Shown here: one piece after another, positions 27,828-51,000 of the stretch
Numbering within the stretch: position 1 is the first letter of the stretch
Layout: each line of letters starts with the position of its first letter
Source of the DNA: Klebsormidium nitens
Taxonomy: Eukaryota > Plantae > Klebsormidiophyceae
Length of the DNA: 64,000 nt
Direction: 5' to 3'
Assembly (NCBI GenBank): GCA_000708835.1
Contig: DF236971.1
Location: forward strand, 1-64,000
Notes under the pieces: generated by a model
Told to the model about the DNA's origin: nothing
Seen by the model: the letters and a program-made list of their open reading frames with translations, nothing else
The model's database searches: none
Program-made: the position numbers and the translations under genes

Positions 27828-29602
27828 CTGGTAAACCGACTCCAGGACATTCCGGGTGCGCTGGAGCTTGACACCGGGGTTCGACCCCGGTCGGTTGTCC
27901 TACACAAAATGCACGCGCAGTGTCAGCCTGGATCAAGACCTGAAGTTCAAGACAAGGTTGACTGTCCTCGTCCAACTGTCGGCAAAAGCGTGTCGGCAGG
28001 CAGCGTACCTGTTTTGATTGGTGGTGTACTCCTTAAGGTGTCAAGATAAATGGTTGCTTTTATAAGATTCGCTCGATGCAGTCTTTCAAGCGCACGTCAG
28101 TGAGAGCTTGACCGGGCACTGATCTTGCAAGTCTTCCCCCGCAGGACGTTTGTGTTTGTTCCTCAACTCCTGTTGTCACGCTTACATGGTGTCACCCGCA
28201 TGACGTTCTGCGGTCACCTTAACCAACCCTAATCTGGCCTCTTGCTAAGATCCGACTTGAGATAACAAGCAAGTGCTAGCTAGTTTGCACGCTGAAACTT
28301 GCGACATTCTGAACCAGGATGCCCGCTTTGCCTCCATCTGTCACTACTACGGTACATCAATCTGACCAGCGACACCATGTTGTGCCCCATAAAATACATA
28401 AGAAACACTTTCTGCATATTAAAGCTTGGTCGTAGCAGTGCCCTATATCCAGTCAGGATACGTCACGACACGAGGGCCACAATGGAGCTTTGGAACGTGC
28501 TCCATGACAATCTGCTTTCCTTAGAAACAATCACCCGTGCATGGACGTCATCATACAGGAGCGTATATGCCGCTTCTTAGAGAGCCGCCATCTCCACATT
28601 GGTACACGGTGGTCTTTTTCTGGTCCAAGGAACGATGAGAGGGAGGAGCCACTCGATTCTTCGGACTGAGAACACAACAAAACGACTTGATGCGCGCGCA
28701 GCCGGCATGACTGACCTCTGAAAGGCTGCTCCTCAGCAGGGTCGAAGGACTCCGCTGCATGCCTCTGCAAAGACGGCAGATTGGAGCCGCCATAAAGGGC
28801 GATTGATCAGAGCGGCTGGTGGAGGCATCTGAAATTATGCCCTGCAAAACCCCTTGATGAGGAGCTCGCACAGACTTTGCCATCGTATATCCTGCAACCC
28901 TGATGAATAGGTACCAAATCTGTTGCCTAGGTAAAGAATCTAATAGTAAGAAAAGCCTCCCTGCTTTTGAAACACACCCACTTTTGGAACTTGAAAGGGA
29001 TGTGCAGTGCAAATATTGGATCTAGGTATAGCCGGTTGAGTGGATTCGCATTGACTACTAGGAGTGGCGGTAAAAGCTGGGGATGGAGACTTAGCCTTTA
29101 CCACTTCATGTTGGTAATGGAAGTGGAATCTCGATTCGGCTACCACGTGGCATTTGGTGATTTGACCGAAGTTCGTCACTCATGTCGTCACTCAGGATTC
29201 TGCGCACACTGAATTTGCACCTAGTGGCAAGTTCAGGGCGCCAAATGGATAAGTTCACTGTCACCTCCGAGTCCTTGAGACCAGGTTCATGCACCGCGCT
29301 TGTGCTCTTACGAGCTCAAACTTCAAAGCAACAGAACACCGCTTTCATTCTAACTACTCTAGCTTCCTCTCCCGCCATTAAGAGAATCTAGGACTAGGTC
29401 CACGTCCGTGTACTTTCGAAAAGACTCGAGTTCGCGGAAGTCTTCATCCTCATCTTTCAGATACTTGCATTGCTTCACTTGCATTGCATTCTTTCCTTTC
29501 AAACCACTGTCAAACTCAAATTGCCCTTCCTGGCACTTGCAGAATCCGTCCCACCACCTTACTGGTGCTAGCGCCCTCTCCCCACTCAAGTAGTACTAGT
29601 AT

Positions 29603-29622
29603 TAGCTGCACTAGTGCAGCTA
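29603..29622. other. Perfect 20-bp palindrome just upstream of the haloperoxidase ATG
   Basis: tagctgcactagtgcagcta is its own reverse complement and sits among several CTAG/gcagctagtct repeats, 36 nt before the ATG at 29659. Confidence 0.85.
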
Positions 29623-29658
29623 GTCTCGTGCAGCTAGTCTCGGTGGTCTTCTCCCACA

Positions 29659-32600
29659 ATGGCGCCAACAATCAGAGCTGCTCAGCTTGCAGCGATACTG
29701 CTAGTGTTCCTGGCGTGCTCCGCCCCTGTGCTGGCCCTGAACAACGTGGTGACGCAATGGAACGTCAGGTACCAGGGCGTGGTCAGATCACTCTCCATTG
29801 CCAACCAGCAGAGCTCGAAGTACTTTGCGGAGCTGCATTTGGCGCAGGTGAAGGAACTTCTCCGAGCTCAGTGACTGTGATGTTGGCTTTAGTGGTGAAT
29901 CTCAGCTGAGTCAGCATGTGTGTTGATGGTCAGATTGTTAGAAGGTACTCGTCCAGTCAGAAGGTGCTCCCAGGTTGGATAGACGGGAGATAATTGGTTC
30001 AAACTACAGAAAAAGGATTATGAAGGTCTTCACTGCACTCAGTTGCAAGCACCTTTGCTTCTACAGAAAGGAAGCAGTACTTCGAGGGGAATTGACTAAC
30101 ATGATGTGTTGACTAATACAGCCCTCAAATGACTGTCATGCTGCTCACTTTTCAGAGTCAGCTGTCAAACACCAGTAGCATCAGACAGTCTGTAAAAGGT
30201 GTTTACTCAGAACCAGGCTCTCTTCTTGCAGTACTATGCTGTCCTGCTGGCGGCGCCATCTGGCAGTAATGCTTCAACATCAGAAAATGTCGCTGTGAAT
30301 GCCAGCGCGGCTGCTGCCTACGCTGGACACTACATTCTGTCCGCAACCTTCCCATTCCAGCAACCAAACTTCGATGCCCTCCTGAAGTCCCAGGTAACAT
30401 CCCCTGCTTGCCCCGTCAACTAGTTCCTTTGTAGAGCGACGACTGAAAGAGTTTGAATCGCCAAGGGGGGTGCAAGCTCCACTAGGGTCTAAACGGTATT
30501 ATGGCATGGATAATGCATGTTCATCTGACAATATCTCTTCGTAAAGCCTGTGCATTGGACAGGAGGCCTTTGAATGCCAAGCTGAGTACTATGAGAACGG
30601 TCTTTACGAAAAACCTGTCGACCAATCCGTGCCTACATATCCAGAATGTAACGGATTCATCTTCTTTAGAGGTGCAGTCAAATATTTTTACAGAGCATCC
30701 CCAAGAATCAGAGCCGATGCTAACATGAGATACTTCCAGAGTGCTTACTTGTGCAGCTAATATCTTAGCTTCCCTTCTGCTCAATTTCCCTTCTTCATCT
30801 GCCTTACTCCAAGCTCAGCGCTTTCACTTCCTCTTGACGTCAGGTAGGGGGATTGAGCTCTGCTGACAGGACTGCCGCTCACGACCTTGGGGTCAAGGTG
30901 GCAACCAAGATCATAGCAGCAAGGTAAGTACTACCGTTGCTTTATTACGTCCTTGTCCTCTGAAACATTGCCAGCCAGTATACTGAAACGAAGGTTGAAA
31001 CAAGCATCAAAGCGATACATTCAGTTGCTTGCTTCTCTGATGAGATTCCCGAGTACAGAGTTCGCCTTTCAACTGCACCTCAGCGAGTTCCTGCTCTTGA
31101 CACCATGATCCGGATGTTGAAAATTAAGATGCTTGTTGAATGCGTCCGCTTACAGGGGAGGTGTAAAGCCTAAAGTAGCCTGCCACAAGTGAACAGAGCT
31201 CATGAAGGTTTAGCTCAATCTGACGGATTGGGCGAAAGTGAACTTCGTCCTAAGTTTTCAGAATCTTCCGCACAATATCTGCGCAAAATGTGACCTTCTA
31301 CATACAAAGTTTTCCTAATGCGGATTCGTTAATCTAAATATATTAATCAAGCCCTACTGAAGCTGAAAAATGCTTCGAGCCGAACCCTCTTAGAACGCTC
31401 TCAAAGGAAATGTTGTTCGTGCTTTTTCCAGATGCTGATCAGCTGTTCAAGTGTAGTATGTGTTTCTTACAGATGCTCATAAGCTGTTTTCTTATTGCAG
31501 AGTGAATGACGGGAGTGCGGATTGGTATGACTTCACCCCTTCTCCTGCAAACGGAACGATTGGCAAGTACCAGTTCACACCCAACCAGACCAACGCCCTC
31601 TATCCTCAGGTGAACATGGCAACCCCTCGAGCTCACCTTTGGCGACTAATAGCAGAAGCTTTTGTAGCTTTCTTGATTAACCGCTCTCTCAAAAGCTGCA
31701 ACTTTCGAAAGCCCGCTGTCTGCTTATCCCGATAATGCATTTCACAACTGTGAGTTTGCGAAGAAGAGAAATTGCTGCAAAGCGTGTTTCGCGATCATCA
31801 TACCGAGCCTGCTTCATCACCCACAGTTGCAAAACACGCGACCGTTCTTGGTCGACCCTTCCCGCTTCAACACCACGAACGGCGGCCCGCTCACGGTTCC
31901 ATCAGACACCTACAACACCCAGCTCGCAGAGGTGAGTTCTCCGAATGAACGGCCAGCTCGTTGCACTGCCACACAGGTCAGGATGTAATAAAATTATTGC
32001 GGGCTTCTGACCGGCTCGCGCCTTGGATCTGAGCAGCCGTTCAAGGGAAGCCCTCAGATTTGTTGTCGGCCGAGTAGTGTGAAAGATTCGGGTCTTCGTT
32101 CTCTGTGTACGGGAGCGACTGGCTCTTCAGAGCGAGGGAATTTCAAATTAGGGTGCAACAAATAGGTCGGCCAAAAACTCTCTGAAAGTTAGGTCCTCTT
32201 CACCGGTTGAATCAGCCTGAACTCCTTTTCCAGCTTGATTACTGAGGCTCTTATCTGCTCGATTGCGATTGTATCTAAGAAGATCGTCCTTAAAGTTACT
32301 CTAAACGCGCCTCTTCCCGGGGTCAACCTGCATTTTCATCTCTTTGCGGTTCGAAGGGCCCTCCTGACACTCCGTCGCAGCTTCATCAAAGTCCAAATTC
32401 ACCACCAAACGGTCAGACTCTGCTGCAAGGCAAAACGGACCGTTAAATGTGTAGCGTCAATAGCTTGGCAGCTTAGACCCAAGTTTACCACTACTAACAT
32501 GCCTGACGCAACTTCAATAATGTCCCTCCATAGGTGCGCACACTGGGTTCCAGCACGAGCTCCAACCGGAGCGCCACTCAAACAGAAACCGCCTACTTCT

Positions 32601-35296
32601 GGGCCGACCTCGCGGGTAAGTACCCCGGGGGAGGGTACTGGAAAACCTCGTAAGAATCCGAGTTTGATTTGCGCTAGTTTTGTAGTCTGCAAGCCCGCAG
32701 ACTAATCACAGTGGTCGTAAAGTCGTGATCGATGTTTCTTTATCCGGAAGGGTAGGAGTCCAGAAGTGTAGATCTGAGACTTTGATTATCCAATAGATTT
32801 TGGTTTTTCCGTTACTGGTATCAGCTTGACCGTTACTGGTATTAGCTTGACCTCTCGACGTCCTTTTGAGAACGGAAGTACGAACTGCTTCTCTCTCATA
32901 ATATGAGCAGAAGTTCAAGAGACGCATCTTTCCCAGATCCTTGCGGCCCCTGGCATTCTAGGCGACGGGCACTCAGGCCTTCGGTCGCCTGTTCTGGACA
33001 TTTCCGGCAACGCCCATCTCCAGCCTTCCAATAAGTTCGCCAGCGCCCTGAGCTCGGTCCCCGTTGTCGGTCAGCTTCCGTGCGTTCCTCTAGTAGCTTC
33101 ACAGCCCTCCATAAGAGCCCCCACACCGCTGACGTCATGCTGACGCTTCCTCCTGCAGGCACGGGCGCGATCACCAGCCACTGGTACAACATCACGGCGG
33201 CGGTGCTGCCCAACTCGACGGACGTGCTGACGACAGCCAAAGTGTACGCGGCGATTGGAGTTGCTATCTATGACGCCAGCATTGCGGGGTGGAAGCAGAA
33301 GTACGGCGTCCTCTTCTGGCGGCCCATCACAGCCATCAGGTGAGTCTACTCAGATCGACGTTTTGCACTGCTTCTTACAGTACTGATTCTTCTTCACGAA
33401 AGGTTTCCAGTGCTTTTCGGTGAGAAGGGGAAACGTTTAGCATATCGCCGTTGTTCGAGGAACTATGCCCAGGAACCTGCTTCTTTTGAATGTGTAAATC
33501 AAAGTATGGTTCTCAGAAGCTCGGCATGTAGAAACCGTTTTGGGAGCGTTCTGAGATCTGTCCAAGGCCCCCATTCTGTCGAGGACGAATCGCCGTTCAC
33601 TGTACGGCATGTTTTCCAGCGGATTCGCGTTTGCTTTCTGGAAAGGGAAGTGTGCGATAGATCACCGCACCCTCGATTCGGTAGGCTTCTCCACTAGCGA
33701 AGACGTTGTTCCAAATCTACCGCTTCTAACCTTGATCAGATTTGGCGTTGATTTTGTGTTTTTCAGACTATCTTAATCTCAAGTTGGGACATCAAACCTC
33801 GATGTCATCCTTATCCCCAGGCAAGGCGACGGTGTGAATACCCCGGACGCAACCTGGTCGCCCCTGCTAAGCACGCCAAACCACCCCGAGTACCCGAGCG
33901 GCCATTCTGTCACGAGCGGCGCCGCAGCGGTACGTACCGCGCCCACCCTCTTTCCAGTGCACAATCTTCGTCGGTAGCGCCTGATTCGGGTCGAGCTCAC
34001 GGCTCCTTTGTTTCACTAACGACACTGGTTAGTGGCAAGGATTTCTGGCTGAGACCTCAGTCACAGGATGGTATGGCTGCTAACCAGGTTTGATAACCAG
34101 ACTTTAGTGTGGTACTTTGACCAATAACCGCACGTAATCATGCCATGCTAATAACGTGGTTACTGCTCGAGTCTGGTTGTTGGACCTTCAACCAGCTTCA
34201 AACCAGCCCGTAACCGACTATGTTTTACCGTCAAAAAATCCTTGTAAGCGCTGAGCAGGCGCTGAGCGACGGATCGACTGGCAGCAGGAGGCGAGCGTCT
34301 AGAAATGAAACTGACAGTGAATGTCAAAAACTGCAGGGTATCCTTATCAACCACTTCGGGAGCGACAATACGACTTTCACCATCGGGTCGGAATACACGT
34401 CAGCAAACGTCACATCCCTTTCTCCGAGAAGCTACACCAAGTTTACGGACACAGCGACGGAGATCGGTCTGAGCAGGTACGCAAGGACGAAACGGCTTGC
34501 CAAGAGACAACTCATCCTGATTCCCAAATGCTTCTCTACTTGTGGATGCTGCGTTTGATACCCGGGAACGGGCAGAGACGACATCGAGCGAGCGAATGTG
34601 GTTTAACCCCCTTCGGATCGATTCATTTTGGCCTCTATCGCCCTTCGCTGGAGAAAAACGTTTTCCCAAACGAATTAGTTGACGCCTTCTAAAGCCCTTA
34701 TAACAACGCTCGCGCTCCGATACACAGGATCTACGGCGGACTTCACTTCCGGAAGGCCATTGAGGACGGGCAAGCTCTCGGACTGGCGGTGAGTTGCTTT
34801 TGTCCTGCTTCCGACAATTGCTCGTCTGGAATCCAGGTTCTCGTTGTCAAAGTATGTCGGCCGCATGTTTTGCCCGCACTGTGTGCGCACCGGTCAGCAC
34901 AATCTTCGATTCCATTGGAGACAAAGCTACCCGCGTCGATCCGTTCCCGTTACCTAGGCAAAATACAGGGGGGAAATCCGGAGGAAATCTGGGCTCGGAG
35001 CTTGGATTTGAATCCACTTCAAACATTAGTTTTGAAAAAACCCGTCGCTTTCACCTGTGAAGCTCTATTTGTTTTGCGATGCCTCTGGCGTTGCGCAGCC
35101 TACGAGGATATTTCCTAACTCTGTCCCAATGAAATGGTTCTCCGTCCTGTTCCCGGAACCTGCTTCACGACCCGACATGAAGCTGCTAACGCGCTCCCTA
35201 TGCTTGCAGGTTGCGAGCGCGGTTTGGGCATCCTTCCCGTCCTCCTACTCTGTGGACGGGGTCAGCATCGTGACGGGAGTGCCTTTGAAGAATTGA
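29659..35296 (+). CDS. Secreted vanadium-dependent haloperoxidase family (PAP2/VHPO superfamily, bacterial-type) protein, 11 exons, 434 aa
   Basis: Exons 29659-29847, 30232-30393, 30844-30923, 31501-31609, 31827-31931, 32534-32615, 33159-33339, 33821-33929, 34337-34476, 34728-34788 and 35210-35296 total 1305 nt and are all phase-consistent. It has a signal peptide and all three vanadate/phosphate-binding motifs: KYGVLFWRP (K-x6-RP), HPEYPSGH and SRIYGGLHF. TETAYFWAD and AAAAYAGHYILSATFP also match the family. No transmembrane helices beyond the signal peptide. Confidence 0.9.
32809..32852 (+). repeat. Intronic tandem repeat, 21 nt x2
   Basis: ccgttactggtatcagcttga followed by ccgttactggtattagcttga. 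Confidence 0.75.
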
Positions 35297-38061
35297 TGAC
35301 GTATTGGCAGGCAAACCCGAAATGTAATTAGCGCCACTCTCATCCAGGGGCTTTCGACATGCGATTTCTCGGGTTGATTTTTGACGTAACTCTTAGGGGT
35401 TCGGCGATTCAGACTTTTTTGATAATACGGAATTGAAGGTGGATCGTGAGCGCGTCCTGTAAGGAACACCGCATCCGAAGGACTAAGTTGGTCGATTTGT
35501 GAGCCGGAATGGAATCTCTAGCCTCAATTTGAGGGCTTAAGTCCGCGCAATATTACAGGCTTAAGACACTCGGTCCGAGCACTCTGGCTAACGGGAAGAG
35601 AGCCTAGATTATTGAGCAACGACTCCAGGACTACTCTTGGGATTGGGATTTTGGAGACATTATGCTCTGGCAGTTGCTTTATGCCATGCAAGGTTAATCC
35701 ACCTCGTCCTTGGAAATGATCGTTAATACTTCCAACAAGATCCCTGATCGCTGTGATAGCTAGTACTTAATAGTGTCTCGTACATGGGTAAAGTCTGCCC
35801 TATTTGTAAGCACTCTATGTAATGTCCCTACCCTTGAAGAATCGTCGATGCGTCAATGCGTGCACTTTTGCAAAACTACTACGTTCACACCACCGTAGGA
35901 CTGAACGACGAATCAGGATAAGGGAGTCAACTATGTTCTTGTTACTTGGCCTCATCTGCGGGATGTGCAAGGCATTGAAGGCCGGTATTCATAGAAACAG
36001 TACGGTACCAGACGTCCATCAAAATGGTCACTTTTTTTTGTACACGCTTACGCACCTTAGCCCATGCGGCAGAAACGATATTAAACAACATCGGACTTCG
36101 GCTTCCTAAGAAACTTTTACTACTCTAGTTACCGAGAGATTGCTAACAATGAAGCAACATGACTAATGGACAGAATGCAAGGCTTACTTCGTGATCAAGT
36201 GGGACGATTTGTTCTCTGTGCTCCGGCCCTACGTCTTGCTTTTTTGAGCGAGCTTTTTTCGCCATGGGCCAGGCTAATGGATGTCCGAATGGTACTGCAG
36301 CTCTATCAGAATCTACCTGCCGAACCCTTTGGTTGCTACTTTTCTAAGACTTAGGCCTGGGCACCGCACCCTTCCTATTTTATCAACGTACCATTGTAAG
36401 TTTGTCCAATCACGCGTGCACTCTATGATCAGGGTCCTGCTTGTGTAAAAGGCAAGGAATCAGCCCAGATGTCGCCCCGTGCAAGCAGCGCTGTATGATC
36501 CGATCTGCCCGGCCCGGCTCGCGATTGGAGGCGTCTGTGTCGCTTGGACATCCTCAGAAGCTGCCTCTCCGTCGACCGGAAACGGAAGTGCCGGCCTCGT
36601 CTGCACCAGGTGTTAGCGTCGCTCAAGCAGTTGACTACGGACTGTCAAAATGGGTGCAGATTGCAGAGGGGCGCACCGAAAGCACTTCTCAGGGAGAACC
36701 GCAAAAATGTAAGGAAAGGTTCGAGGCTCCTGATCCGCCAGCTTCCGGTCGATACCAGCGGCCCACGTGGGAGCAACACTGGCAAGAAGCGCGCTTGGAC
36801 GGCAGGACGGGGCAGGGGGACCAAACATCACTGAAACGCAGCGGACCATGATCCGCACCGTCAGATGAGAATTCTCTCAATCTGGACGGTCAGGATTGCT
36901 TATTTCGGATGTCCCGTGCCCGAAGCGGTCCTCGGTTGGTCTGAATGGAGGGTTTAGAAGAGTGTTAAAAGAAAATCTACGGTTTTTTGGCTGTTATACC
37001 CACCTAAACCTGCCCCCAATTCCTCCTACACGGCGCTTTGCCCGGACCCAAACCTTTGGGTTTCAAAGGTGACCCTGTGGAGGTTCAATCCCACCAATTG
37101 TCAGTTCCGGGAAATTAGCCGTTTGGCTGCTGGCACATGATTCCTGTTGCTGAATTTCTTACCTGGGGTGTTTGGTCCCCCTGGGACGGGGCTTCGGCGC
37201 CGGCTGACGTAGGATAGCCGGTGCGCTATGAAACGGTTTTGAAAGCTGAAACTTCGCTTAAACGTCTCTCAAAGTCTCTCCAAGTGCTGATTAACCGCGC
37301 CAGCCCAATTAGCAGTGCGGAGTCCAACTCACTACTAGGAGACCACCAGAGTCAAATGACGGTACTGTCATGCGGCGCGATCGATTGGCGCACTGGAAGT
37401 CTGAAAATTAACATCCTGACCAGTAAAGTCATTAGCTCTCGAAGGCCTCATTGCTTATGGATAGCGCTCCGAAAGAAGAAGGGGAAGAGAGCATGTGAGT
37501 CATGCCTGCTTTGGCCCGGCTAGTATGACTGTATTCGGTTTGGCCAGCTGCAGTCGGTTGGCATCACAATGCACATATCTACAATACATGACGTGCTAAC
37601 GGTGCATAAATCTCATGAGATCATGGGCCCTGAAGGGGCCAACAATCTCTAAAGAAGCTTTACTGCAGCCCAATATTGGCTCCTAGCCATGCAATCTTGT
37701 GCAGCTCATCGAGAGATTTCAAGACCACTGGTCAGAGCATGCAGTCTGCAGCAGGAAACTCGGTAGAGCCGACGTCAAAGTTGAGAAGTCGATGGGCTTA
37801 TAGTCTTCATGGGCAACTAGCATCCCCTATGTTTAGCTGTATTCCTAAGCTTTCTGTTCTGGTTGGCAACCTGTGATACGACAAGCTCTATAAGGTCTTT
37901 CCAAAATTGCCAAAACGTAAACGTCTCATTACAAACTCTTCGCTTAGGATACTCCAAGGCAAACGTTCTGGCGTTTGCTTGTATGTGCCCTTGGGGCTCA
38001 GAGTATTTTGTATGGCTTAAACGCGCAGTAACTTCCCTATAGACAGAATTTCTGATCTGGT

Positions 38062-39297
38062 CTACGGGTTGACGATAGTGCCCGCGGGGAGGAGCGCTGC
38101 CAGGTTGGCGATGGCATCGAGCAGCTTCGTAAGGGGACCCCCCAGGATTTGGCCCACCTGCGCGCGCGCGCACAAGCATCAGAATGGTTGCCACGTGTGC
38201 AACGGCTTTAAGAACGCCGGAAGAGTCGACCTCAGTCACAGAGGTATACGCAAGCATGGTATCACGCAGTCAGCCGTCTCCGAACTTGACCACTTTCAGC
38301 TTGCCTGTTTGCTGGACGTTTACAACCAGTCGGCACGTCTACACGTTTGATCTTCTGCAAGACGGAGAGATCTAAACGATCTGACGTCATAGCAAAAGTG
38401 CAGACCAATGTCGTTAGAAGTTCCCTTCAAACCCTGCACAACGTTGTTCCCATAACCCTGACTTTCGTGAAAAGAAAGCTACCAGCGCGCTCACCGCAAT
38501 GGACGTCTGCGATGCCTGCCCGGCGGTGTTGAGCAGCGTGGTCACCAAACCCAGCTGGTTAGTGAGCTGGGTTATTGCAAACAGCAGGGTTTGCGCCAGG
38601 AGAACCACGGGGTCAAGCGCGCCACCTCCGCTGAAGAGACCGCCCAGATTGCCCGGGAGCTGCTTCAGCGAACGGGCGGCGCCGCTGACGTCATTCTCCT
38701 CGAGCTTGGGAAGCTCGCGGCCCTGGAAACAAAATGACCTAGTGATTACGTCAGCACTACGTTGTGCTGATAGAAGATCGATCCAAAACCTACTGCTATT
38801 ACAGAAGTGTAGTAGATGTCTAGCAGAAGATTCAGATTTGACCGTAGAAATCAGGAGGTGGAGGTGCGCGCCTTGCAGAAAGGCTCTCAAACATAGGACC
38901 GAACTTCGTTTGCTAGCCCCTTTCTTGAAAGCCCCTCATTTCACCTTAGAGCACTTGTTTTGCAACTAGCGCAGTGTCTGACTGTAGTGTTGGCTGAGAA
39001 CACATTCGTTTGCTTGCAAGCAAAACAGCGCGCGGTGACTGCAACAACAAGCAAAACCTTGAATGAGTCATCGATTCCAACAACATAGGCCGCTATTGGG
39101 CCACAGGGATCAGAGGGGCGAATGGGCAAATGGGTCCTTCCCGCTTCTAGAAAAGAGGGAAAGAGTAACATAATAATAAAAGGCCAAATGGGTCACGCGG
39201 AGAACCAAGGCAGTGATGTCCAGCTCACCTGCGCAGCAACTGCCGCAAAGACGGCCACGAGAACCGAAGCCATGATCACGTACTTGAAGGCAGCCAT
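38062..39297 (-). CDS. Small secreted Leu/Ala/Gly-rich amphipathic protein, 3 exons, 130 aa
   Basis: Exons 39297-39229, 38722-38495 and 38157-38062 all join in phase 0 with canonical GTGAG donors and CAG acceptors. Product: MAAFKYVIMASVLVAVFAAVAAQGRELPKLEENDVSGAARSLKQLPGNLGGLFSGGGALDPVVLLAQTLLFAITQLTNQLGLVTTLLNTAGQASQTSIAVGQILGGPLTKLLDAIANLAALLPAGTIVNP. Confidence 0.8.
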
Positions 39298-39680
39298 CAC
39301 TTTTGGAAAGCAGGGAAGTAGATGCGGGGCGAGCTGCGAATGGGTAAAGAAACTTTGCAAGGAGGGTAGAATCTGAGCAGTACTTGGGGCGACTGAGGTT
39401 TTGGCTGCGAGCTGTAGATTGCAGTGGCACTTTGAGCAGTGAAGCTGATGTATCTCCACTTTTGACTGAGGCAAAACCGAGGCTCGGGCAGACGGCTCTG
39501 TTTAGATAGTAACCGCTGAGCAGTGACACTATCTAGCTGGTAAGCATCCGGCGCAAGGCGGAGAGCTCCTCATCCATGCTGACGTCATCTGCTGAAGATG
39601 CTGATGTGACGTCTCAGGTGGGCGCAGCCCGCGAGCTCTCGACCACACGTAGGATTCATGCACCTTCTGTTTCGGGGCAG

Positions 39681-41568
39681 GTACCGGGCTGCAGATTGAG
39701 TCCTAGTACTTTCAGTACTTTGCTCTCGGTACGTAGTCATGATGTTGATGAACTCGTTTTGATTTCTTGGTCTTTGTTGTATCAGCCCAATTGCACCGGC
39801 CAGCCTCGCTGTATATCTAGGTACCTATGTACCTAATTCTCTTTGTAGCCTGGCATCCGATCTAGTCAAAAAGGTAAGTATGGGATAGGTGTGTAGGCCT
39901 ATCCATCTATACATAGATCACAGCAGGCCATTTCAGCAGAGAGGACTGGCATCCAGTATGAACCCGCCGTGCCTATCAGCGAATGTGCAGGCGATTCTTG
40001 CGTAAGTTTGCAGTCTGCAGTACCCAGGTATATTACACTCAAAAGCCCCGCACCAGTGTTAAGGCTTTGTTACGGGAAGTACAGCTGTGCGTACTGCTGT
40101 GGATTTGAGTCCAGTGTACCTACGTAGCCGGCTTGGTACCTTCCTTGTACCGACGCTTGTGAAGTCGGATATCGGTCCTGCCCAGAGTTGCCTGACCGGC
40201 TGCTGGCTCTGCCCGGTAGTTCCTGCTGACGGCTGCTCAGACTGACGAGCTAAACCTGTAACATCCCCGGCTGTTAGGCTACGTAATCCCCGGGCCTTTG
40301 AACACCTATTGCAGCATTGGGTGCACCGAACCTGTACGCGACGGTCCGCTCGTACCAGTACGAAGCAAAGTCGGCGCCACGCCGGAGAATTCCGAGCAGT
40401 AAATGCATAGTGCTTCGAGTAACCCGGTGAATCCGTGATTCGCGCATATTCTTGGCCGGGCGGCTACTGCAGTGATGATGTGGCAGGTAGCCTGAACCTG
40501 GTCTGCTTTGCGGAACCGCTCAACCCCAGACCAGGTTTCCTCCAAGTCTTAACGTTTAACACCATCTACTACACCGCTCAATTTATCAAGTATTGAATGT
40601 GCTGATTAGTGTCAAAGTTTTGTCAGCCGGCGACAACTTTCCGATCCGCTGCGGCGTTTGGTTCATGATGCACTGAACTTGGGGCCGGGGCATCATATAC
40701 CGTAGGCTCTCAGTGCAGGAATATTACCTTCGTCGGTACTATGGTACTAGGACTCGCTACCTACTTATTTTCTAGGTTGTGCTCTGAGCAAATCTCTAGG
40801 CTAAATCTATGCTTCATTTCAGCTAGCTTTCTGGCGCAGCCACCTATCTTTGCCAGGTGTCCAAATCACCAGGTAGATTCTTTGCGTCGCAGCTTCCTAG
40901 ACCACCACGTGGCTTGCCAAGACGATCTGAAGCACGGACTGGTCCGATTGCATCCTCGCCGCGGATTGTGACCCGTCGTGAGCTACCGGTGCATGAATCA
41001 TAAGCTGCGCACACCTAGCTAGGTACCTCGTGAGAGTCGACTCGTTTCTTCCAATCATGGATCCTCGGCTCATGCCGACAGGGTGTCATAATTGATGTGC
41101 GCTCCGAGATCGCTCTCCGCCTCGCAAAACGGATCGCGTGATTGGGTGTGACGTCACCGTGCCGCAACAAGAGCCGCGGCTTGACGTCAGCCCGTGCTGA
41201 GTTCACTTGACGTCGCCAGGGGGCTGCGCCGAGTTCGTGCACCTGTTGACGAGGCCGCAGCCAGGTTTCAACCCGCAATCAGAACGACAGACACGTCAGC
41301 ATTCACCAGGTTCAGGATTAGTTGCACGTCGCCAAGTACACTATAAGTACGTCAGGTATGTACGTTCTGCACGAAACATGACGGCCCGATGAGCTCTGGG
41401 TAGTCAGTTCGACAAGTATTAAAGGCCGGAAGAAAAGCAGCCCGCAGAGTGCCTACAAAGCGTGACAGTCAGCCCTGGTGACTACGGTAGTGTAAAATTG
41501 CCAAGGATCAAAATCGCGTAATCACTGGTGTACCCGAGTACTACCATCGTTTCTGGTCGAATCAGTAC
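39681..41568. promoter_or_regulatory. Divergent promoter region with a dense cluster of GTAC cores (candidate copper-response elements, SBP-box TF sites)
   Basis: About 24 GTAC by eye in 1.9 kb, against about 7 expected at uniform composition. Sub-clusters lie at 39681-39832 (6), 40020-40150 (6), 40334-40361 (3), 41336-41363 (3) and 41530-41568 (3). The region sits between two divergently oriented secreted-protein genes. Confidence 0.55.
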
Positions 41569-41782
41569 GACTCCGTTCAGCTGACTAGCAGGCTAAGTTA
41601 AAATTCTTGCCCCGAACGTCTACACCAGCTTTTCCTGGTTGAATCCAGATTGAATCCTCGCAGGCTGCTTGCAGCCAGCATTGCCCTCTTCATCCTCTCC
41701 GCCCATAAAGCCCCTCAAAAGTCGGCTCTTTCCAGAATTCTCCCTCCCTATCCTTTCCAGATTCCGACACTGACAGTCAAGC

Positions 41783-44700
41783 ATGGCTCCGTCAGCGTCC
41801 CGCCTCCTTTCCGCTCTGCTCCTTCTTGCGGCGCTTGCTGACGTGGCGTCCGCTGCGGAAGATTTGCTGTACGTTTGGACGGGCGACGATGACCACCAGC
41901 AGCCAGACTTCCTGGCGGTCTTGGAGTTCAATCCGACGTCGCCCAACTACGGAAAGGTGGTCGCCAAGGTGGACCTTACAGGGCCCAGTGCGTTCGGGAA
42001 TGAGGTGAGAGATCCCAAACCTGCCCCTTCCTTTGTTCTGGTGCGTTTCTTTTCCTTGCTCCCCTTATTTGCGTGCTTGAAGCGATAAGCAAGGGGCGAG
42101 TTGGTAGCAAAGGGGCTGGCCAACGAGCATTCATTCCCACCTTCCTCCGGCTTAACATGGGCGGTCTTTCTAGGTTGACGTATTAAGTCCTACATACTTT
42201 GATGCTTAAGGTTGATGCTTTAAAACATTGGACAACCAGCGCATGGAAAGAAGGTCGCACTTGCACACATCCTTATAGATTTGGTTCCAAATCTGGGTGC
42301 ATCAGAAGCTTTCCCTTGAAGAAATGGTCTTTGTTTGGACTTAAGGGAGGTGGCTCAAGGTACCTGCAAGGGAGTTGAGAACCAGTACTCCGGAAATCTG
42401 CTGTCTTCAGACTTGACTGAAATGCTTATGGATGTCCTGGCTGTCTAAAACAGTCTACCTAGCTCAAGATATCTGTCAGGGTCAGTGAGCATTATTGGTT
42501 TAGAGGCTGCCTCCGATTGAAGCCAGGTTTCGAGGGGCTCGAGCTTCAGCGTTTCAGAGGGTGAACCTAATACATGCGGCCGGCAGTCCTTACGAGATCC
42601 AGATATTGAAAGACTTTCTGGTCTTGTATGTCAGTTGTATCTGGGTCCGCTTCGGAACGTTTGAAATCATCCTAGTCGTCAGTTGTTCAGAGCTTTCAAT
42701 TGTGCAAGCTTTTCAATCATCAAAACCTCCTCTCTGCAGCCGCACCGCAGCACGTTTGGCAACGACAAGCAGACGCTCGCGGGCGCCAATATCTTAACCG
42801 AGTTGGTTAATCCGTCCACAAAACTATCCGACTCATTATTTTCTCCCTGCAGCCGCACCACATCACGTTCAGCTACGACAAGAAGACCCTCGCGGGCGCC
42901 GGGATCTTCTCCTTCCTCTTCCCCTTCTCCGCGCGCATCCCCGCGCAGGAGCAAGTCTTCTTCTACGACACGAGCAACCCGCGCGCGCCCACCTTCAACG
43001 GGGTTACCGCTAACCCGCTCAAGTCGGGCGCTGCGGACGAGTTGTACCCACTTTCGGACGGCACGTTTCTGCTGAGCTCACTGGGCACTCGGGCCGGAAC
43101 CGCCGAGGGCGCGATTACGGTTTTGTCGGCGACCGGGACGATCCTCGGGGAGTATCCCCTGGTGCCGCCGCTCGAGTCGTTCGACCCGCACGGGATCACC
43201 GTGCGCGAGGACCTTGACCTGTTCATAACCACGGGTGAGTGACGGGTTAAGCCGTAACCAAGTTGATCTTGTGCGAAGTCTTTTCTATAGATTGCGTCTA
43301 TTTGCGCGGTATGAAAACCTGCGTTATTTGGGATCACCGTGCGCGAGGACCTGGACCTGTTCATAACCACGGGTGAGTGACGGGTTAAGCGATTGACCCC
43401 TGGTTTTGAGCTAGCTTGATTGCATGTGGATTGCGCGACGGTAACAGTCCGTCTTATTTGGGCATCACGGGCGCGAGGACCTTGACCTGTTCATAACCAC
43501 AAAGCGAGTGGCGGGTTAAGCCGTAACCTTGGTCTTGTGCTGAGTCTATGCCAAGAATTGCATTGAGTTTGCGCGACAGCAGAGCCTGTGTCATCAGCTG
43601 TCGTCAGCGAATCGAGACCGATTTGCGCTGAAGTCCTTCGATCGTAGGACGCAATAATCAAGGATCGCGCTTGCTGCAAATGCACTCAAAATTGGGAGTC
43701 TGTACGAAACCCGCGCTCTTTTGTCGGGTCGGTTCTGTCTTGGTTCTCTGACTTGTGATTTTCAATGTCCAATGTCAGTCCTCAGTCTGACTGCTCGCAG
43801 GTGGCTCGTTTTGTCACTTGGCGTCAGCCAACGGCTCTCTGTATCACATCGGTCTTCTGGTTTAATTTGAAAATATTCATGGAAAATAGCTTTGTCGAAG
43901 TCTACTTGCAAATTACAACGCTATGTGCCCAACAATTTCGTTCAATCCTGATAGACTGGCTTCAGGGCTTGTTCAACACATGGCAATCGGTGCCTCTGCG
44001 CAACTTCTTTTCTCCCTGATGAAGGGCTTTTTATGCTCTTGTGTCTTAGGCGCTCCTGTTCTTAAGGCTTTCTTCTCCTGCAGATTTCATCGAGCCTGCT
44101 TCGGCCCTTTCGCTTACCCAGCTGCTCTTCGGAGGCATCCGCTATCAGAAGAGTAAGTGCCGTATCTTTTGATTTCTTTTTTGCGGCTGCCGGATGTGAT
44201 TTGCTGAACCGGAGATGAATACTCTGAGCCTTTCAGGCGCGGGGTTTACAAATGAAGACCCATGCGCTTTCTCCTTTGTCGACGTTTTCGTGCAAAGTAT
44301 ACGTTATCAAGTTTCCTCAAGGTTCAACAGCATAGGCTTGAATGGCCCGCACACTTCTCCAGGGAGCCTAACCCCCAGTTTTTTTAAGCGCTTCAGCCGC
44401 AGCATTGATTTACTCTTTCAAATAGCCGGTGCGTCCCTCAGTCCGCTTGATTGTCCCAACTGTTGACTTCGTGCCACGTGTCGCGCGCAGCGATCCGCAA
44501 GTGGCGCCTCTCCACCAAGGAGATCATCGGAACATGGACGGTCGACGATAAAGCGGGGCCGTTAACCAACTACTTCATCCCCAACGACCCCTACGGCCGC
44601 ATCATCGCGTCCGCGGTTAACGCTAACAAGATCTACCTCCTTGACCCAAACCTCAACGGCACGTGAGTGGCGCCACGTCAGTTGGTCTTTCGTTTTCGCT

Positions 44701-46958
44701 GCTTGCTCAGAAAACAGGGAGCAAGCTGGAATACGTTGAAGGATCATGTGACGCTTGCACAAATATGAATGAGCAAGGTTTTGTCCTTCCCCGTCGGGAT
44801 ATGTAAGCCCTCCGCTTTCTCATAAGCGGACCGTCTTTCAAAGCCCTTCCTGGTTCTTGCCAAAGCGCCTGCTTTCCTCACGAAGTGTCAAGGAGACCTT
44901 TGTGGGGAAGCGTTATTTAGTACGTACACACGGGCTTCGCGCCTTCAAACTGTTGGCCGATATTTCCATTTTTTTCAAACGATGTGCTTTATCATTATTT
45001 TGCACTGATTATGCAGATTGGGCGGCCTTAAATACTACACCGCTCTCGATCTGACCGCCGCCGGTTACCCCAACTCCAACCCCCACTACGTCAGACTGAC
45101 GCAAGACGGCAAGACTGCCGTGCTTACTTTGAATGCTGGGAACAAGGTAAGAATTCAGAAAGCCCTAGTCTAAAACTCAGCAAGCACCACTGGTGAGGTT
45201 CACGGATTTGAAATGTGCTAGTTTCGAAAGAAACGGAGTCTTGCAATCCTTGCAAGAAAGAGTCTCGCAGGAATAGGGCGTGCTCATTAGATTCTTTCCT
45301 GGACGTACCTGAGCAGATACAACTTAGGGTTGTCGAATTGCGTCAGTTTAGATCGCACGAAGTGTGAAAGCCCTCAAGCGTTTCCTGTCATATGGGTATT
45401 CTTCTGCGTTCATCGAGCTACTTCAGACCTGATGTCATGAAAGGCAGTAATCAGCAGGTACGAAGAATGCTCCCCCTCTCTCCCCTCAAGTGGTCGCGGT
45501 CTGATTGCGAAGCAAAGAGGACCCGTCCACTGCTTCATTTTTGAGAGAATCCTTGTCATCTTGCGCAGGTCTTGCTTCTCGACTTGACCAACCCGTACAA
45601 CATCAAGATCAAGGACGTGCTGCCTCTGCCTAACGGTGAGGACAGCTGTCAAGCTCTGCCTTTGAAGCCCTACTCCAAGCTTCCATTGCTGGGTTTAACT
45701 TTTCGAGTTCGATGTTTGAAGTGATTCTGTTCCACTTTGATATGGGCGAATCCTTCCGTGCCTTATGTTCATCCTCGTGTTTTTCGTGAACGGTGACTTT
45801 TTGACAGAAGTTCGGTGCTTTTCTGAGACCTGGTGATCCAGGTAGAAGGCATTTCTGTCCGCGGGGGGTTTGAACTTGTGTCTCATTCACTCCACTCCCT
45901 CTCTCTGAATTTGGCTTCCTCTGTATACCGCAGGCGCGAATCCCCACTACGCCGACATTCACCCCGACCAGAAACGCGTCGTCGTCGTCGTGAGTCACAT
46001 AGACCCTGGCCCAAAAACCCTAAAAAACCCTAACCCTAAAACCTGACCAGCTTCCAGCGCTGCTCGGATCTCATCCTCGTAGCATCCGGAGGCTTTCGTC
46101 GAGCACTCGTTATAAAATGAAAGAGTTCCTGCCTTTCCACAACTGATCTCCGTTGCATCAGTCGGCGATGAGAGGTGCTTGGAAGAATATAAGCTCAGTG
46201 GAGAAGCGGACTTCGGAAGAGCTGCATTTGAACCTGATAGATGTGTTACTCAAGAGACAGGTCGTCCTCTCAGCGCTTAGGTGCATCCCGCATTCCTTAG
46301 TGCTCGTTTACCTAGCTGCTCCATCCACGTATGCACAGCCCACACAGACATAAAAGAGAGAACTTCAACAGGAAAGATTGCCCCAACGTTCCCGCTAATC
46401 ATTTTCCATCTCTTTTCAAACAGGACTACTTCCTGGATTTCAAGACCTATGGGATCATTCACCGCCCCGGTGACAAGATTGTAAGCTTCCCTTCTCCAAT
46501 CCATTGTTCAATCAAGGTAGTCGGATTTTACGTTTTTGGCAAATCGTTTCCCTGCGCGCTCCGCCAAACTGGGCGCTTCTTCAATTTTGCTCAAACTGGG
46601 AACGTGCTTTGACCCTGCCTTGACGACTCTTGTCGGCCTCGATCGTCTTGCTTAACCCGTTTCTCAATGCGCCCTTGGCAAGCTCATCTTCAAACGTCCG
46701 CTGAATTCTAGATATCAACACCCTGGTAAAATCAGGATAACGTCGCTGATCTAACTCGATAGAAAATATGTAACTCAATTCAGCAATTCATGATCCTAAC
46801 CGTCTTCCTAAACCCGTTTGCAGATCCACGTGTACACGTTCGACACCGGCAAGCTCATTCCTGACCCCAACTGGCCTAATCCGGATTTCAAGAACCTGTT
46901 CCCCGCTCAAGGCGTCACCAACCCGCACGGAACCGCCTTCTATGCGTCAGGCTACTAG
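41783..46958 (+). CDS. Secreted SBP56 / selenium-binding protein (methanethiol oxidase-family) beta-propeller, bacterial/fungal short type, 9 exons, 429 aa
   Basis: Exons 41783-42004, 42853-43234, 44084-44152, 44491-44662, 45017-45146, 45569-45635, 45934-45989, 46424-46480 and 46824-46958 total 1290 nt and are phase-consistent. It has a signal peptide and the motifs DFLAVLEFNPTSPNYGKVV, GNEPHH, FDPHG, TDFIEP, IRKW, NPHY (x2), DYFL and terminal NPHG. Confidence 0.85.
42730..42790 (+). repeat. Degenerate intronic copy of the acceptor and start of SBP56 exon 2
   Basis: ctctgcagccgcaccgcagcacgtttggcaacgacaagcagacgctcgcgggcgcc matches the real ccctgcagccgcaccacatcacgttcagctacgacaagaagaccctcgcgggcgcc 113 nt downstream. 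Confidence 0.8.
43192..43525 (+). repeat. Three tandem copies (130-138 bp period) of the SBP56 exon 2 3' end and donor
   Basis: gggatcaccgtgcgcgaggacct(t/g)gacctgttcataaccac occurs at 43192, 43330 and 43460. The second copy keeps GTGAGT; the third has lost it. Confidence 0.9.
46012..46044 (+). repeat. Short degenerate telomere-like (A)nCCCT repeat in an intron
   Basis: Sequence reads aaaaaccctaaaaaaccctaaccctaaaacct. Confidence 0.5.
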
Positions 46959-48061: not shown

Positions 48062-51000
48062 TTATACGTCTAAGTGACTCCTCGCTCGCAGGCCGCGAAC
48101 CAGAAAGTCCGCGAGCGCCTTGCTGACGTCACAGAAACCCCGCCGGAAGTCCAGGAATCTGTCGATGGCCGCCGCCAATGTCAGGTCGTCCACCTCTTTA
48201 CTTCCGTTTCCAATTTCCCCCACGGAATTTGCGCTGACTTCCACCCCCCAAACCGTTCTGCAAAAGCTCCGGAACAGTTTAGCTGCGTCCTTGGGGTCCG
48301 TTTCGGGGGGACTGGAGCGAGCCCCAATAAGATCCCCCCCCTTCGCAACCATCTGCTTGACCTCAAACCGCAGCGCTGAAAGGTAGTCAAGATTCTCAAC
48401 TGCAGATATGCCGATGACGGTCGCGCCTCCGTCAGAAGGCACTACAAGGTAGACCACGGAAAGCGAGTCCTCCGAACCGGGCCCTGTTTTCGTACTACCC
48501 GCACCGTCTGCCTGCTTATTCTCCCTGAGACCCTGCACCCAGGCGCACGCAACAAGGCCCGGAGTCACTTGCGCCGCTGCGTCGAAATCGGGCACCGTTT
48601 TGAAGCAGCACTTTTCCGCGTATTGCACGCAGCTCGCGAGCAGGAAACGGTGGAGCTCGCGCGCGCGGGCGCCCGTCTCGCGCGCCATTCGGACGTCCAC
48701 GTGGAGCCGCTGCTGCTCGCGGACGAGCGCCCGGTAGTGCGCGAGCAGCAGCGGGCCGAGGTCGCGCGATTCGACGCCGCTGACGTCGCTCTGACGTCGT
48801 CCCAGTGGGCTCGCGGCCGGGGGCGAAGCCTGGCCCGTTTCTTTTCCCCCAGTCCCTGGACTTGCTTCGCTTTCTAAAACGTTCCGAGTGGTGATCCGGT
48901 ATTCTTCGCCGGCGCGAACGATCTCGAGCGCGTGCGCCGGGACCGCGTCAGGGTTTGGGAGGTTTAAGCAGAGCTCCGACTCCAAGAACGTCGCCATATC
49001 GGCCACTGCTCGGGCGTTTTGAAGCGCGGCCGCGATCGCGCCGTCTGGAGAATCCAAACCCGCCGCCGCGGCCGCGAGCAGCTGGAAGGCCTCTTGGAGA
49101 AGCGCGCGATCGTGCGCCCCGGTTTGGACGATCGTCCGGATCGCGGTCCGAAGTTTGTCCGTTGCTTTCTTGGTTTCGTTGCTTCTTATGAAAGCACGCG
49201 CGAGCGCAATATGTGCGCGCGAGACGAGAGCCGCAGGGGGGTTGGCGACGACGTGCGAGAGGAGGCGCTCGCATTTCACGAGGGAGGCAAGTGCGGCGGA
49301 GACCTGAGAAAAGCAGGAGTTTTACCTCTGGAGTCCGGCCAGTCACAGTCGACAAAATGGATCGACCGCACGGTTTTTCACGATTATCGCCGCAAACAAA
49401 GCGGAATTGGAAGGCACTTGAGTAGATGAGAACGATAACCGAGCGGGGAGATGGAGAAATCATGAGAGATGCTCCGGTGAATAATGTGCAAACAGCCTGG
49501 GGTCGATAGCAGCGGAAAGTAAAATATGTGATACCGAGATACAATAAGTGTGGGTAGAGCTTCAGCAGGCAAAAGATGTGTTGACATCCTGAATCGCAAC
49601 AACGTAACGCTTGTCAGAGAAAGGAGCGATACGCCCCAATGTCAGGTTGCGATTGTATGCTCAAGGCGCGTGGTTTGTCGCAAAATGCACCTATCAAAGC
49701 CGGGGAAAGCCGGCGAGCTCCACAACATAAAACACGCGCCTGCCGCAATTGTGCGCTGGGCAATCATTTGGCACCGCCCATACGCTTCGCTTTATTGACT
49801 CAAACTCAAACCCGGCCCTTTTCCGGCGACATTTTCAGATATAAGTCCGCAGCCCTCACCTGCGACTGGTCGCCCAGAAGCGCCGTCCCTCGCAACAGCA
49901 GTCCCACCGCGAGCGTTTCCGTCGTGGGAAGGTAAACGCTCCTGAGCGCTTCCTTCTTCTGCACGTCGTTCGCCCCAAGCTCCACCTCTTGACACTCCAG
50001 AAGCGCGCAAGCCTCGGCGCAGAGCACCAAGCCGTTTCTGGTGTCAAGCTTCTCCGCCCTAGCCAGCTCGGCGAGTCTCAGCAGCTGCGTCGGTAAGAAG
50101 AGCCCGTCGCTGTAGTGATGCTCGCGGCACTGCGCGGCGACCGCGCTTAAACCCTCAAACCCTTTCCTGACCGCGCCGGCCAATACGTCCAACTCAGCCA
50201 ATAAGCTCTGCGCCCGCAGAGTGTAATTTACACTCCCCGCCGACCCCGCCTGCGACTCCAGCTGCTCTGACGCGGCGCGCGCTAGTGTGAAATGGCCCAG
50301 ATCGAGCAGGATTTCCGCCAGTCTCAACTGACACTCCAGCCAGCACTTTTGCAGAACCGCGTGCCGCAGGGGGACATTCACACCGCCGTGTCCGTCGCCC
50401 ATCGGCTGTGGTGGGAACGCTTTCGAGATGCGGTTCAGGGCCGTTTCGAGAGCGTTCAACGCGGCCTTCGGACGGTGCTGCGCGCGCAGGACGTCCGAAA
50501 GCACGAGGCCGCCCCGGGCCAAAACCTCCAAACCATCCAAACCCTGCCCGGCCGCGGCACCGTCCACCCCCCCATTTCCGCCCTCGGGTTCCACCCCCCA
50601 TCTCTGTGCCGCGGCATCCAAAGCCTTTCTGAGCAAAGCCTCCGCCTGCGCTAAGCACGCGCTGCCACTTGTGACTTCCTGGTTGGCCGCGACCGTTACG
50701 CTCGCGCGCGATGTCTTTCCAGACTCTGCCGTCTTCTTCGTGTTGTTTCCGGATTTGGGTCTCGGAACATTTAGAGACGCCTCGGTAGAGAGCCCCGGGC
50801 CGTCGGTCATGCCAGTGGCCCACAGGGACCCCACCCGGCAAAGGAACCGGGCACGTGCCAGCTCAAGCTCCGTGCTGACGTTTCCTGCCACGTCAGCATT
50901 CGCAAGAAAGGCTATCGCGGCCTGGTTGCTGGGGTGGCTCGGTGGAAGGTTGTTCGCGTACAACAGTTCCTGTTTTGGCGCAGGAACGGCTTCCGGTGCG

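Follow-up and report, generated by a model that had tools for sequence, protein, structure and literature searches.

We analysed a stretch of 64,000 nucleotides (nt) from the alga Klebsormidium nitens (contig DF236971.1, positions 1 to 64,000, assembly GCA_000708835.1; in the following the window) and studied its gene KFL_000220060, the predicted product of which is a protein of the vanadium haloperoxidase (VHPO) type. Reading of the sequence and a script place the locus at 29659-35296 on the plus strand, with 11 exons and 10 introns that are all GT-AG and measure, in order, 384, 450, 577, 217, 602, 543, 481, 407, 251 and 421 nt. The coding sequence of 1305 nt starts with the ATG at 29659, ends with the TGA closing at 35296 and encodes 434 amino acids (aa). 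The joined exon model equals the public K. nitens protein KFL_000220060 (P0160) letter for letter. This protein was the reference for later full-length searches; before that, single exons were used as queries.

Approximately the exonic share of the locus is contained in 19 public runs from 7 studies. Within the region 29500-35450, contigs of 4 runs from 4 studies skip all 10 introns precisely and with zero sequence differences, each of the 4 runs compared providing one long contig (1.5-2.0 kb). Here, the RNA label of the runs is a guess, and the contigs are called transcript-like for their intron-free, joined form. Upstream they reach at least 119 nt beyond 29500, downstream 210-285 nt past 35450. 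No second copy of the gene was found within the window. KFL_000220060 is a real nuclear gene that K. nitens transcribes, and the intron count of 10 given in a preliminary description of the locus holds for every single junction. All features are listed in Table 1.

Table 1. Features of KFL_000220060, given as positions in the window; residue numbers refer to the 434-aa protein.
Feature	Position	Strand	Remarks
5' untranslated region, minimum extent	29381..29658	+	contigs of X7, X10; no ATG inside 29381-29658
Exon 1, residues 1-63	29659..29847	+	codons 1-26 (29659-29736): signal-peptide-like segment; script, transcript contigs
Exon 2, residues 64-117	30232..30393	+	script, transcript contigs
Exon 3	30844..30923	+	next intron phase 2, position common to Marchantia, Diphasiastrum, Coccomyxa
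Exon 4	31501..31609	+	script, transcript contigs
Exon 5	31827..31931	+	next intron phase 0, position common to Chlamydomonas incerta
Exon 6	32534..32615	+	next intron phase 1, common to Marchantia, Diphasiastrum, Coccomyxa
Exon 7, 181 nt	33159..33339	+	W287 at 33290-33292; motif 1 K290-x6-R297-P298 at 33299-33325
Intron after exon 7		+	phase 2; common to Marchantia, Diphasiastrum, Coccomyxa
Exon 8	33821..33929	+	motif 2 H324-P-E-Y-P-S329-G330-H331 at 33882-33905
Exon 9	34337..34476	+	ends within R386 codon; motif 3 begins with S385 at 34472
Intron after exon 9		+	phase 2; common to Marchantia, Diphasiastrum, Coccomyxa
Exon 10, 61 nt	34728..34788	+	rest of motif 3; H392, predicted vanadate-binding histidine, at 34744-34746
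Intron after exon 10		+	phase 0; common to Marchantia, Diphasiastrum, Coccomyxa
Exon 11, coding part	35210..35296	+	TGA stop at 35294-35296
3' untranslated region, approximate end	35297..35735	+	transcript contigs; end not precisely mapped

Family assignment and fold

Pfam assigns the protein to PAP2 (PF01569; 41.8 bits, cut-off 27.2) and to VCPO_2nd (PF22778; 30.5 bits, cut-off 27), with an additional weak match to DUF6851 in the N-terminal half. When single exons are scanned, exon 8 matches both VCPO_2nd and PAP2 below the respective thresholds, because the exons comprise only 26-63 aa. NCBIfam holds no model that matches KFL_000220060 or four of its green homologues.

Searches against the sequences of the PDB point to the same class. 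Exon 7 alone retrieves the chloroperoxidase of Curvularia (E 8.6e-4) and exon 8 alone the Zobellia enzyme 4CIT (E 4.7e-6). For the full-length protein, all matches up to E 7e-6 are VHPOs or VHPO homologues. The best one is the Zobellia iodoperoxidase 4CIT (E 2.8e-24, with residues 165-405 aligned), followed by two recent bacterial VHPOs (7e-10 and 2.9e-9), NapH3 (6.6e-7), NapH1 (4.3e-6) and the fungal chloroperoxidase (2e-7 to 6.7e-6). Matches to bromoperoxidases of algae and to one acid phosphatase come only at E ~0.1.

The AlphaFold2 model, computed from 65 homologues, reaches a predicted local distance difference test (pLDDT) of 91.4 and a predicted template modelling score (pTM) of 0.90. 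Its top Foldseek match is again the Zobellia iodoperoxidase (4usz/4cit), with which the model aligns over its own full length (template modelling score, TM, 0.74/0.78; ~410 columns). Next come further bacterial and fungal VHPOs, including NapH1, XhnO11 and the vanadium chloroperoxidase (VCPO), while acid phosphatases align with one bundle only, i.e., with the C-terminal half of the model (TMq 0.31-0.37). That KFL_000220060 encodes a two-bundle, VHPO-type protein thus has good support in terms of both family and fold, where "VHPO-type" denotes a fold and sequence class of the PAP2 superfamily and the assignment rests on sequence and predicted structure. The soluble bacterial architecture of roughly 430 aa that the preliminary description had proposed agrees with the 434 aa, the two bundles and the full-length fold match.

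Distribution and phylogeny of the family

Brown and red seaweeds, some fungi and bacteria are the textbook sources of VHPOs. To our knowledge, the green lineage is usually left out of such accounts, and the preliminary description had drawn the same boundary. This boundary is weakened by existing database labels: the Chlamydomonas reinhardtii protein XP_001703431.1 is named "haloperoxidase-like protein" and XP_005645038.1 of Coccomyxa subellipsoidea "acid phosphatase/Vanadium-dependent haloperoxidase".

We collected relatives with an HMMER scan of exon 7 against 1.84 billion representatives, which returned 173 proteins and was followed by a word search with the best full-length match (P0002). 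Homologues are found in the chlorophytes C. reinhardtii, C. incerta, Volvox, Edaphochlamys, Raphidocelis, Coccomyxa, Apatococcus, Elliptochloris, Myrmecia, Botryococcus and Parachlorella as well as in the land plants Marchantia, Riccia, Ceratodon and Diphasiastrum. Among the best 120 matches there is no fern or seed plant and no named non-green eukaryote; most of these matches come without taxonomy, and red algae and glaucophytes were not specifically searched.

Bacterial relatives are numerous (at least 539 in a scan with one genome per bacterial species). The best of them, from Oscillatoria, Verrucomicrobiota, Planctomycetota, Acidobacteriota and others, align over nearly the full length with 30-38% identity, compared to 41-47% between KFL_000220060 and other green-lineage proteins. 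When bacterial genomes were scanned for the pattern of exon 7 alone, no match was obtained; it was the alignment-based scan that provided the relatives. The large Atlas clusters that lie nearest are without exception bacterial and show fusions to extracellular domains. Motif-2 strings like that of Zobellia occur in only two (P0046, P0133) of the fetched proteins.

Three unrooted trees were computed, namely FastTree for 209 rows, IQ-TREE under LG+C20 PMSF for 107 rows and LG+G4 for 41 rows. Each places the named green sequences on one side and the bacteria on the other, with branch supports of 100 (209 rows), 98 (107 rows) and 100 (41 rows), and in all three the unlabelled transcript-like sequences fall on the green side. 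The nesting within bacteria that the preliminary description had looked for as a sign of horizontal transfer is therefore not what the trees give, i.e., the green sequences group together as a single clade, separate from the bacteria sampled. Within this clade, Chlorophyceae, Trebouxiophyceae and land plants cluster separately, and Klebsormidium joins the streptophyte side weakly (support 60 in the 41-row tree). Since the sequences from cyanobacteria do not come out as sister to the green clade in these trees, a plastid origin is unsupported.

Some individual sequences deserve mention. A transcript-like group (P0002, P0154-P0157, P0015; L081, Logan run ERR12684112) is sister to the land-plant sequences and comprises the closest full-length relatives of KFL_000220060 (42-47% identity); it may come from other streptophyte algae. 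On the C. incerta contig JAEHOC010000004.1, a second gene of the family (L085:4486-4640; 419 aa, PAP2/VCPO_2nd) lies ~850 nt downstream of the homologue, so the family is tandemly duplicated in this species. Ceratodon purpureus has a divergent second paralogue of 474 aa (M758_12G122400, P0257; ~29% identity to P0002), which shares a long branch with the unlabelled metagenome protein P0201 at the base of the green clade, a placement that is unsure. Finally, the unlabelled protein P0089 (806 aa), which stands beside Parachlorella in the trees, combines a VHPO-like domain with a C-terminal glycosyltransferase family 92 domain. This fusion may point to a connection with the metabolism of walls or glycans in some chlorophyte.

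Shared introns and origin

We derived exact exon structures from the genomic loci of Marchantia, Diphasiastrum, Coccomyxa and C. incerta. Five Klebsormidium introns occupy the same alignment column with the same phase in Marchantia, Diphasiastrum and Coccomyxa, and one further position is common to C. incerta. Moreover, the exons of 181 nt and 61 nt have identical lengths in Marchantia, Diphasiastrum and Coccomyxa. Because Klebsormidium, land plants and Coccomyxa have these positions in common, the intron-bearing gene predates the split of chlorophytes and streptophytes.

An orthologue with the same eleven-exon layout was also found on a eukaryotic contig of the environmental JGI metagenome 3300060285 (contig Ga0590115_0000767, 109 kb; L082:828-9721). 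Its exons are 62-89% identical to those of KFL_000220060, and a prokaryotic gene caller has split it into fragments. The contig probably stems from another Klebsormidium-like alga.

These data bear on a quite different explanation, namely that the gene is a recent, Klebsormidium-specific transfer from bacteria or stems from bacterial DNA contaminating the assembly. It is true that the closest of the large protein clusters are bacterial and that the first pattern scan had given many distant and no close bacterial matches. Set against this are ten spliceosomal introns that are all spliced in RNA-derived contigs, a best bacterial identity below that to green-lineage proteins, the single green clade, the introns common to land plants and Coccomyxa, and the eleven-exon orthologue on an independent metagenome contig. 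We consider such a recent event extremely improbable and rejected it based on shared introns, tree and spliced transcripts.

As judged by trees and gene structures, the family is instead one ancient clade that spans the green lineage, from algae through bryophytes (liverworts, mosses) to a lycophyte, and not a lineage-specific import. The preliminary description had spoken of a fully domesticated bacterial VHPO of an alga. What remains of this is the VHPO type and the secretory features, whereas the special import falls with the green-wide clade and the shared introns. An older bacterial origin, before the green ancestor, is plausible: since bacterial, extracellular proteins make up by far the greatest part of the wider family, an ancient transfer from a bacterium to the green ancestor would be the most economical origin, which we put forward as a proposal on parsimony.

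Secretion features and glycosylation sequons

The sole hydrophobic stretch of the protein lies at the N-terminus (residues ~7-26), where a short charged start is followed by ~14 hydrophobic residues and V-L-A ahead of the conserved domain. By inspection, this agrees with the signal peptide of the preliminary description. The single cysteine of the protein sits within this leader. A hydrophobic leader immediately ahead of the conserved domain start V-T-x-W-N is present in all green homologues and likewise in bacterial relatives, which often carry extracellular modules as well (PEP-CTERM, dockerin, CARDB, haemolysin-type repeats). Bacterial relatives, too, begin with export signals, so export is an ancestral trait of this family, and the earlier idea that the signal peptide is an adaptation to the eukaryotic secretory pathway has to be given up.

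The sequons behave differently. KFL_000220060 has exactly 10 N-x-S/T sequons, as counted before, compared to 4.85 +/- 1.9 in shuffled sequences, of which ~0.9% reach 10. Green members of the family have 14.5 sequons per 1000 aa and bacterial relatives 4.1, i.e., a ~3.5-fold difference. By these counts, the eukaryote-specific trait is the sequon load and not export. The protein is probably secreted and N-glycosylated.

Active site: haloperoxidase or phosphatase

The three catalytic motifs, described as intact from the start, were each found once by script, i.e., K290-x6-R297-P298 (KYGVLFWRP), H324-PEYPSG-H331 and S385-R386-x5-H392. The HMMER alignment pairs the vanadate ligands of 4CIT with K290, R297, S329, G330, H331, R386 and H392, and both proteins have motif 3 in the form SR-x-YGG-x-H-[YF]-R-x-AIE. 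Vanadate-ligand residues are nearly invariant across 37 green-clade and 68 bacterial sequences. Within the green clade (n=37), K is kept in 36, R in 37, S in 35, H331 in 35 and R386 in 36 sequences, and H392 in all 35 that cover its column. The halide-pocket positions are conserved as W287 in 31/37 and as H324 in 32/37 green-clade sequences, a state from which the halide preference is not readable.

Motifs alone cannot separate a phosphatase from a haloperoxidase because they are common to the whole PAP2 superfamily. A phosphatase hallmark is an Asp four residues after the His of motif 3 (HX3D; Stukey-Carman / Hemrika motif). At this position (H392+4), KFL_000220060 has Ala, and the green clade shows Ser/Ala in 34/37 sequences, Glu in 1, gaps in 2 and Asp in 0, while Asp is found in 21/68 bacterial relatives. 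The absent Asp and the conserved W287/H324 lean towards a haloperoxidase.

This is of importance for the alternative that the protein is a secreted PAP2 acid phosphatase or phosphoesterase that binds phosphate esters, e.g., for extracellular phosphate scavenging. We regard it as rather unlikely, given that the hallmark Asp is missing from all 37 green-clade sequences, that the second-sphere residues W287 and H324 are kept as in haloperoxidases, and that the strong matches, in sequence and in fold alike, are VHPOs without exception, with solved acid phosphatases reaching E 0.1 and covering the C-terminal bundle only. It draws its weight from the motifs KX6RP/PSGH/SRX5H, which define the superfamily and are found in acid phosphatases too, from the Pfam score of PAP2 exceeding that of VCPO_2nd, and from some relatives whose sources call them "membrane-associated phospholipid phosphatase" or "PAP2". 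Furthermore, the apo form of VCPO shows phosphatase activity, i.e., it dephosphorylates substrates (PDB 3bb0 title; PMC4859513).

The fold is also compatible with non-halogenating chemistry, for which NapH3, a non-halogenating VHPO homologue, is the example (PDB 8cxl title). In an analogous manner, KFL_000220060 might catalyse a NapH3-like rearrangement or another peroxidative oxidation, or bind vanadate or phosphate in the wall. Room for this possibility is left by its nearest relatives in bacteria, which lack characterisation and are fused to a variety of extracellular modules. Some homologues replace the motif-2 histidine by Ser/Thr (PMC13198595), and NapH3 aligns with PSGF at motif 2 in the PDB search with exon 8. 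KFL_000220060 and 35/37 of its green relatives, on the other hand, retain every catalytic residue, and we judge a non-halogenating VHPO fold to be improbable.

K. nitens lives in soil and freshwater, where vanadate and halides are scarce. This weighs against a haloperoxidase, as do the motifs shared with acid phosphatases, the activity of apo-VCPO, the precedent of NapH3, an identity of only 25-26% to the nearest characterised enzyme and a loop, bearing Tyr263 in the Zobellia enzyme, that is shorter in KFL_000220060. On the same side we count that a literature search found no functional or activity study of any green-lineage member of the family and that the signal peptide and its cleavage site were assigned by inspection. 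Likewise, the trees are unrooted, their bacterial sampling is biased to the best matches and no characterised VHPO is placed in them, which limits what they can say on the direction and timing of any transfer.

Weighing these points, we assign a probability of about 0.6 to the reading that KFL_000220060 codes for a secreted enzyme that is probably N-glycosylated, has the two-helical-bundle fold of VHPOs and belongs to an old green family of possibly ancient bacterial origin. For real halide oxidation by the protein, we put the odds at even to slightly better than even.

Proposed mechanism and implications

All steps of the mechanism are inferred. The signal peptide would direct the protein into the endoplasmic reticulum, where it would be glycosylated and from which it would be exported to the wall or the medium. 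H392 would bind vanadate covalently, held in addition by K290, R297, S329, G330 and R386, and H331 would aid the formation of peroxo-vanadate from hydrogen peroxide. The peroxo-vanadate would then oxidise a halide to hypohalous acid near W287 and H324, and the hypohalous acid could halogenate or cross-link nearby compounds or work as a biocide.

On a broader scale, green plants in a wide sense (chlorophytes, streptophyte algae, bryophytes, lycophytes) may hold an ancient, unstudied family of secreted VHPOs with bacterial kin of the Zobellia type that is apparently missing in seed plants; we advance this generalisation, drawn from sequence comparison, tentatively and at somewhat less than even odds. 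If true, the VHPO class of halogenating enzymes would be shown in the green lineage for the first time, and soils, crusts and freshwater would have a biological supply of hypohalous acid and organohalogens, possibly along with a wall cross-linking or defence chemistry older than land plants. Halogen chemistry would then be an ancestral, extracellular trait of green algae and early land plants. An active family would bear on terrestrial natural organohalogen formation, on the use of apoplastic hydrogen peroxide before class III peroxidases dominated, and on gene losses towards seed plants. If the proteins are only phosphatases, the finding reduces to an ordinary secreted PAP2 enzyme. The family is testable in Chlamydomonas and Marchantia, which carry it and have genetic tools.

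Window context

Pfam scans of ten long open reading frames flanking KFL_000220060, eight of them in 35297-46958, gave no family, and no Rfam RNA family was found anywhere within the window. The segment 48000-54000 has a G+C content of 58-63%, compared to ~50-53% elsewhere in the window, and contains two long minus-strand open reading frames (49806-51899, 697 aa; 48062-49279, 405 aa).

Comparison with known systems

The chloroperoxidase of Curvularia inaequalis is a secreted enzyme and has Phe (Phe397), not His, at the halide-pocket position. Its structures (PDB 1VNC and mutants) have the active-site motifs and the two-bundle core in common with KFL_000220060 (E 2e-7 to 7e-6; TMq 0.66-0.72 to the model). 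In contrast, the fungal enzyme comprises 609 aa with extra elements and is ~19% identical.

The bromoperoxidases of Ascophyllum (1QI9, 5AA6) and Corallina (1UP8, 1QHB) have the catalytic core and a motif 2 of the H-P-x-Y-P-S-G-H type in common with KFL_000220060, but they are larger, oligomeric and matched at E 0.08-0.7 and TMq ~0.24 only. By sequence and model, KFL_000220060 is not a relative of these classical "algal-type" VHPOs. Class A acid phosphatases (Escherichia blattae 1EOI/1IW8, PhoC 9QCJ, Pseudomonas aeruginosa 7F17) share the three PAP2 motifs and the C-terminal five-helix bundle. They differ in having a single bundle of ~215-230 aa, which matches half of the 434-aa, two-bundle KFL_000220060, and in the HX3D aspartate, which the latter lacks.

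There is precedent for bacterial-like VHPOs in eukaryotic algae, many of them with predicted signal peptides. Bacterial-type VHPOs have been described in brown algae and diatoms (bioRxiv 10.1101/2024.02.19.579948), where Supplementary Table S8 has no Klebsormidium, Coccomyxa or Zobellia entry. A 2026 study reports transcripts of putative VHPOs of a Zobellia-type "group 2" in field-collected macroalgae, including the green alga Bryopsis plumosa, for which its authors do not exclude contamination by epibionts (PMC13198595). The brown-algal and Bryopsis sequences stand outside our trees. Within the same family and clade as KFL_000220060, the homologues of C. reinhardtii (XP_001703431.1), Coccomyxa (XP_005645038.1) and Marchantia polymorpha (MPTK1_2g09150) are 34-45% identical, similar in length, and have N-terminal leaders and the catalytic residues; they differ in species and sequon number.

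The closest characterised enzyme is Zg-VIPO1 of Zobellia galactanivorans (4CIT/4USZ), with 25-26% identity to KFL_000220060. Both belong to the same size class, have the two-bundle architecture with all vanadate ligands aligned, and lack the phosphatase Asp after motif 3. Unlike KFL_000220060, Zg-VIPO1 has Phe five residues before the Ser of motif 2, where the Klebsormidium protein shows His324, i.e., the bromoperoxidase-like state, and its Tyr263 loop is longer. The Klebsormidium gene, in turn, is eukaryotic in build, with 10 introns, a leader of the type used for the endoplasmic reticulum and 10 sequons.

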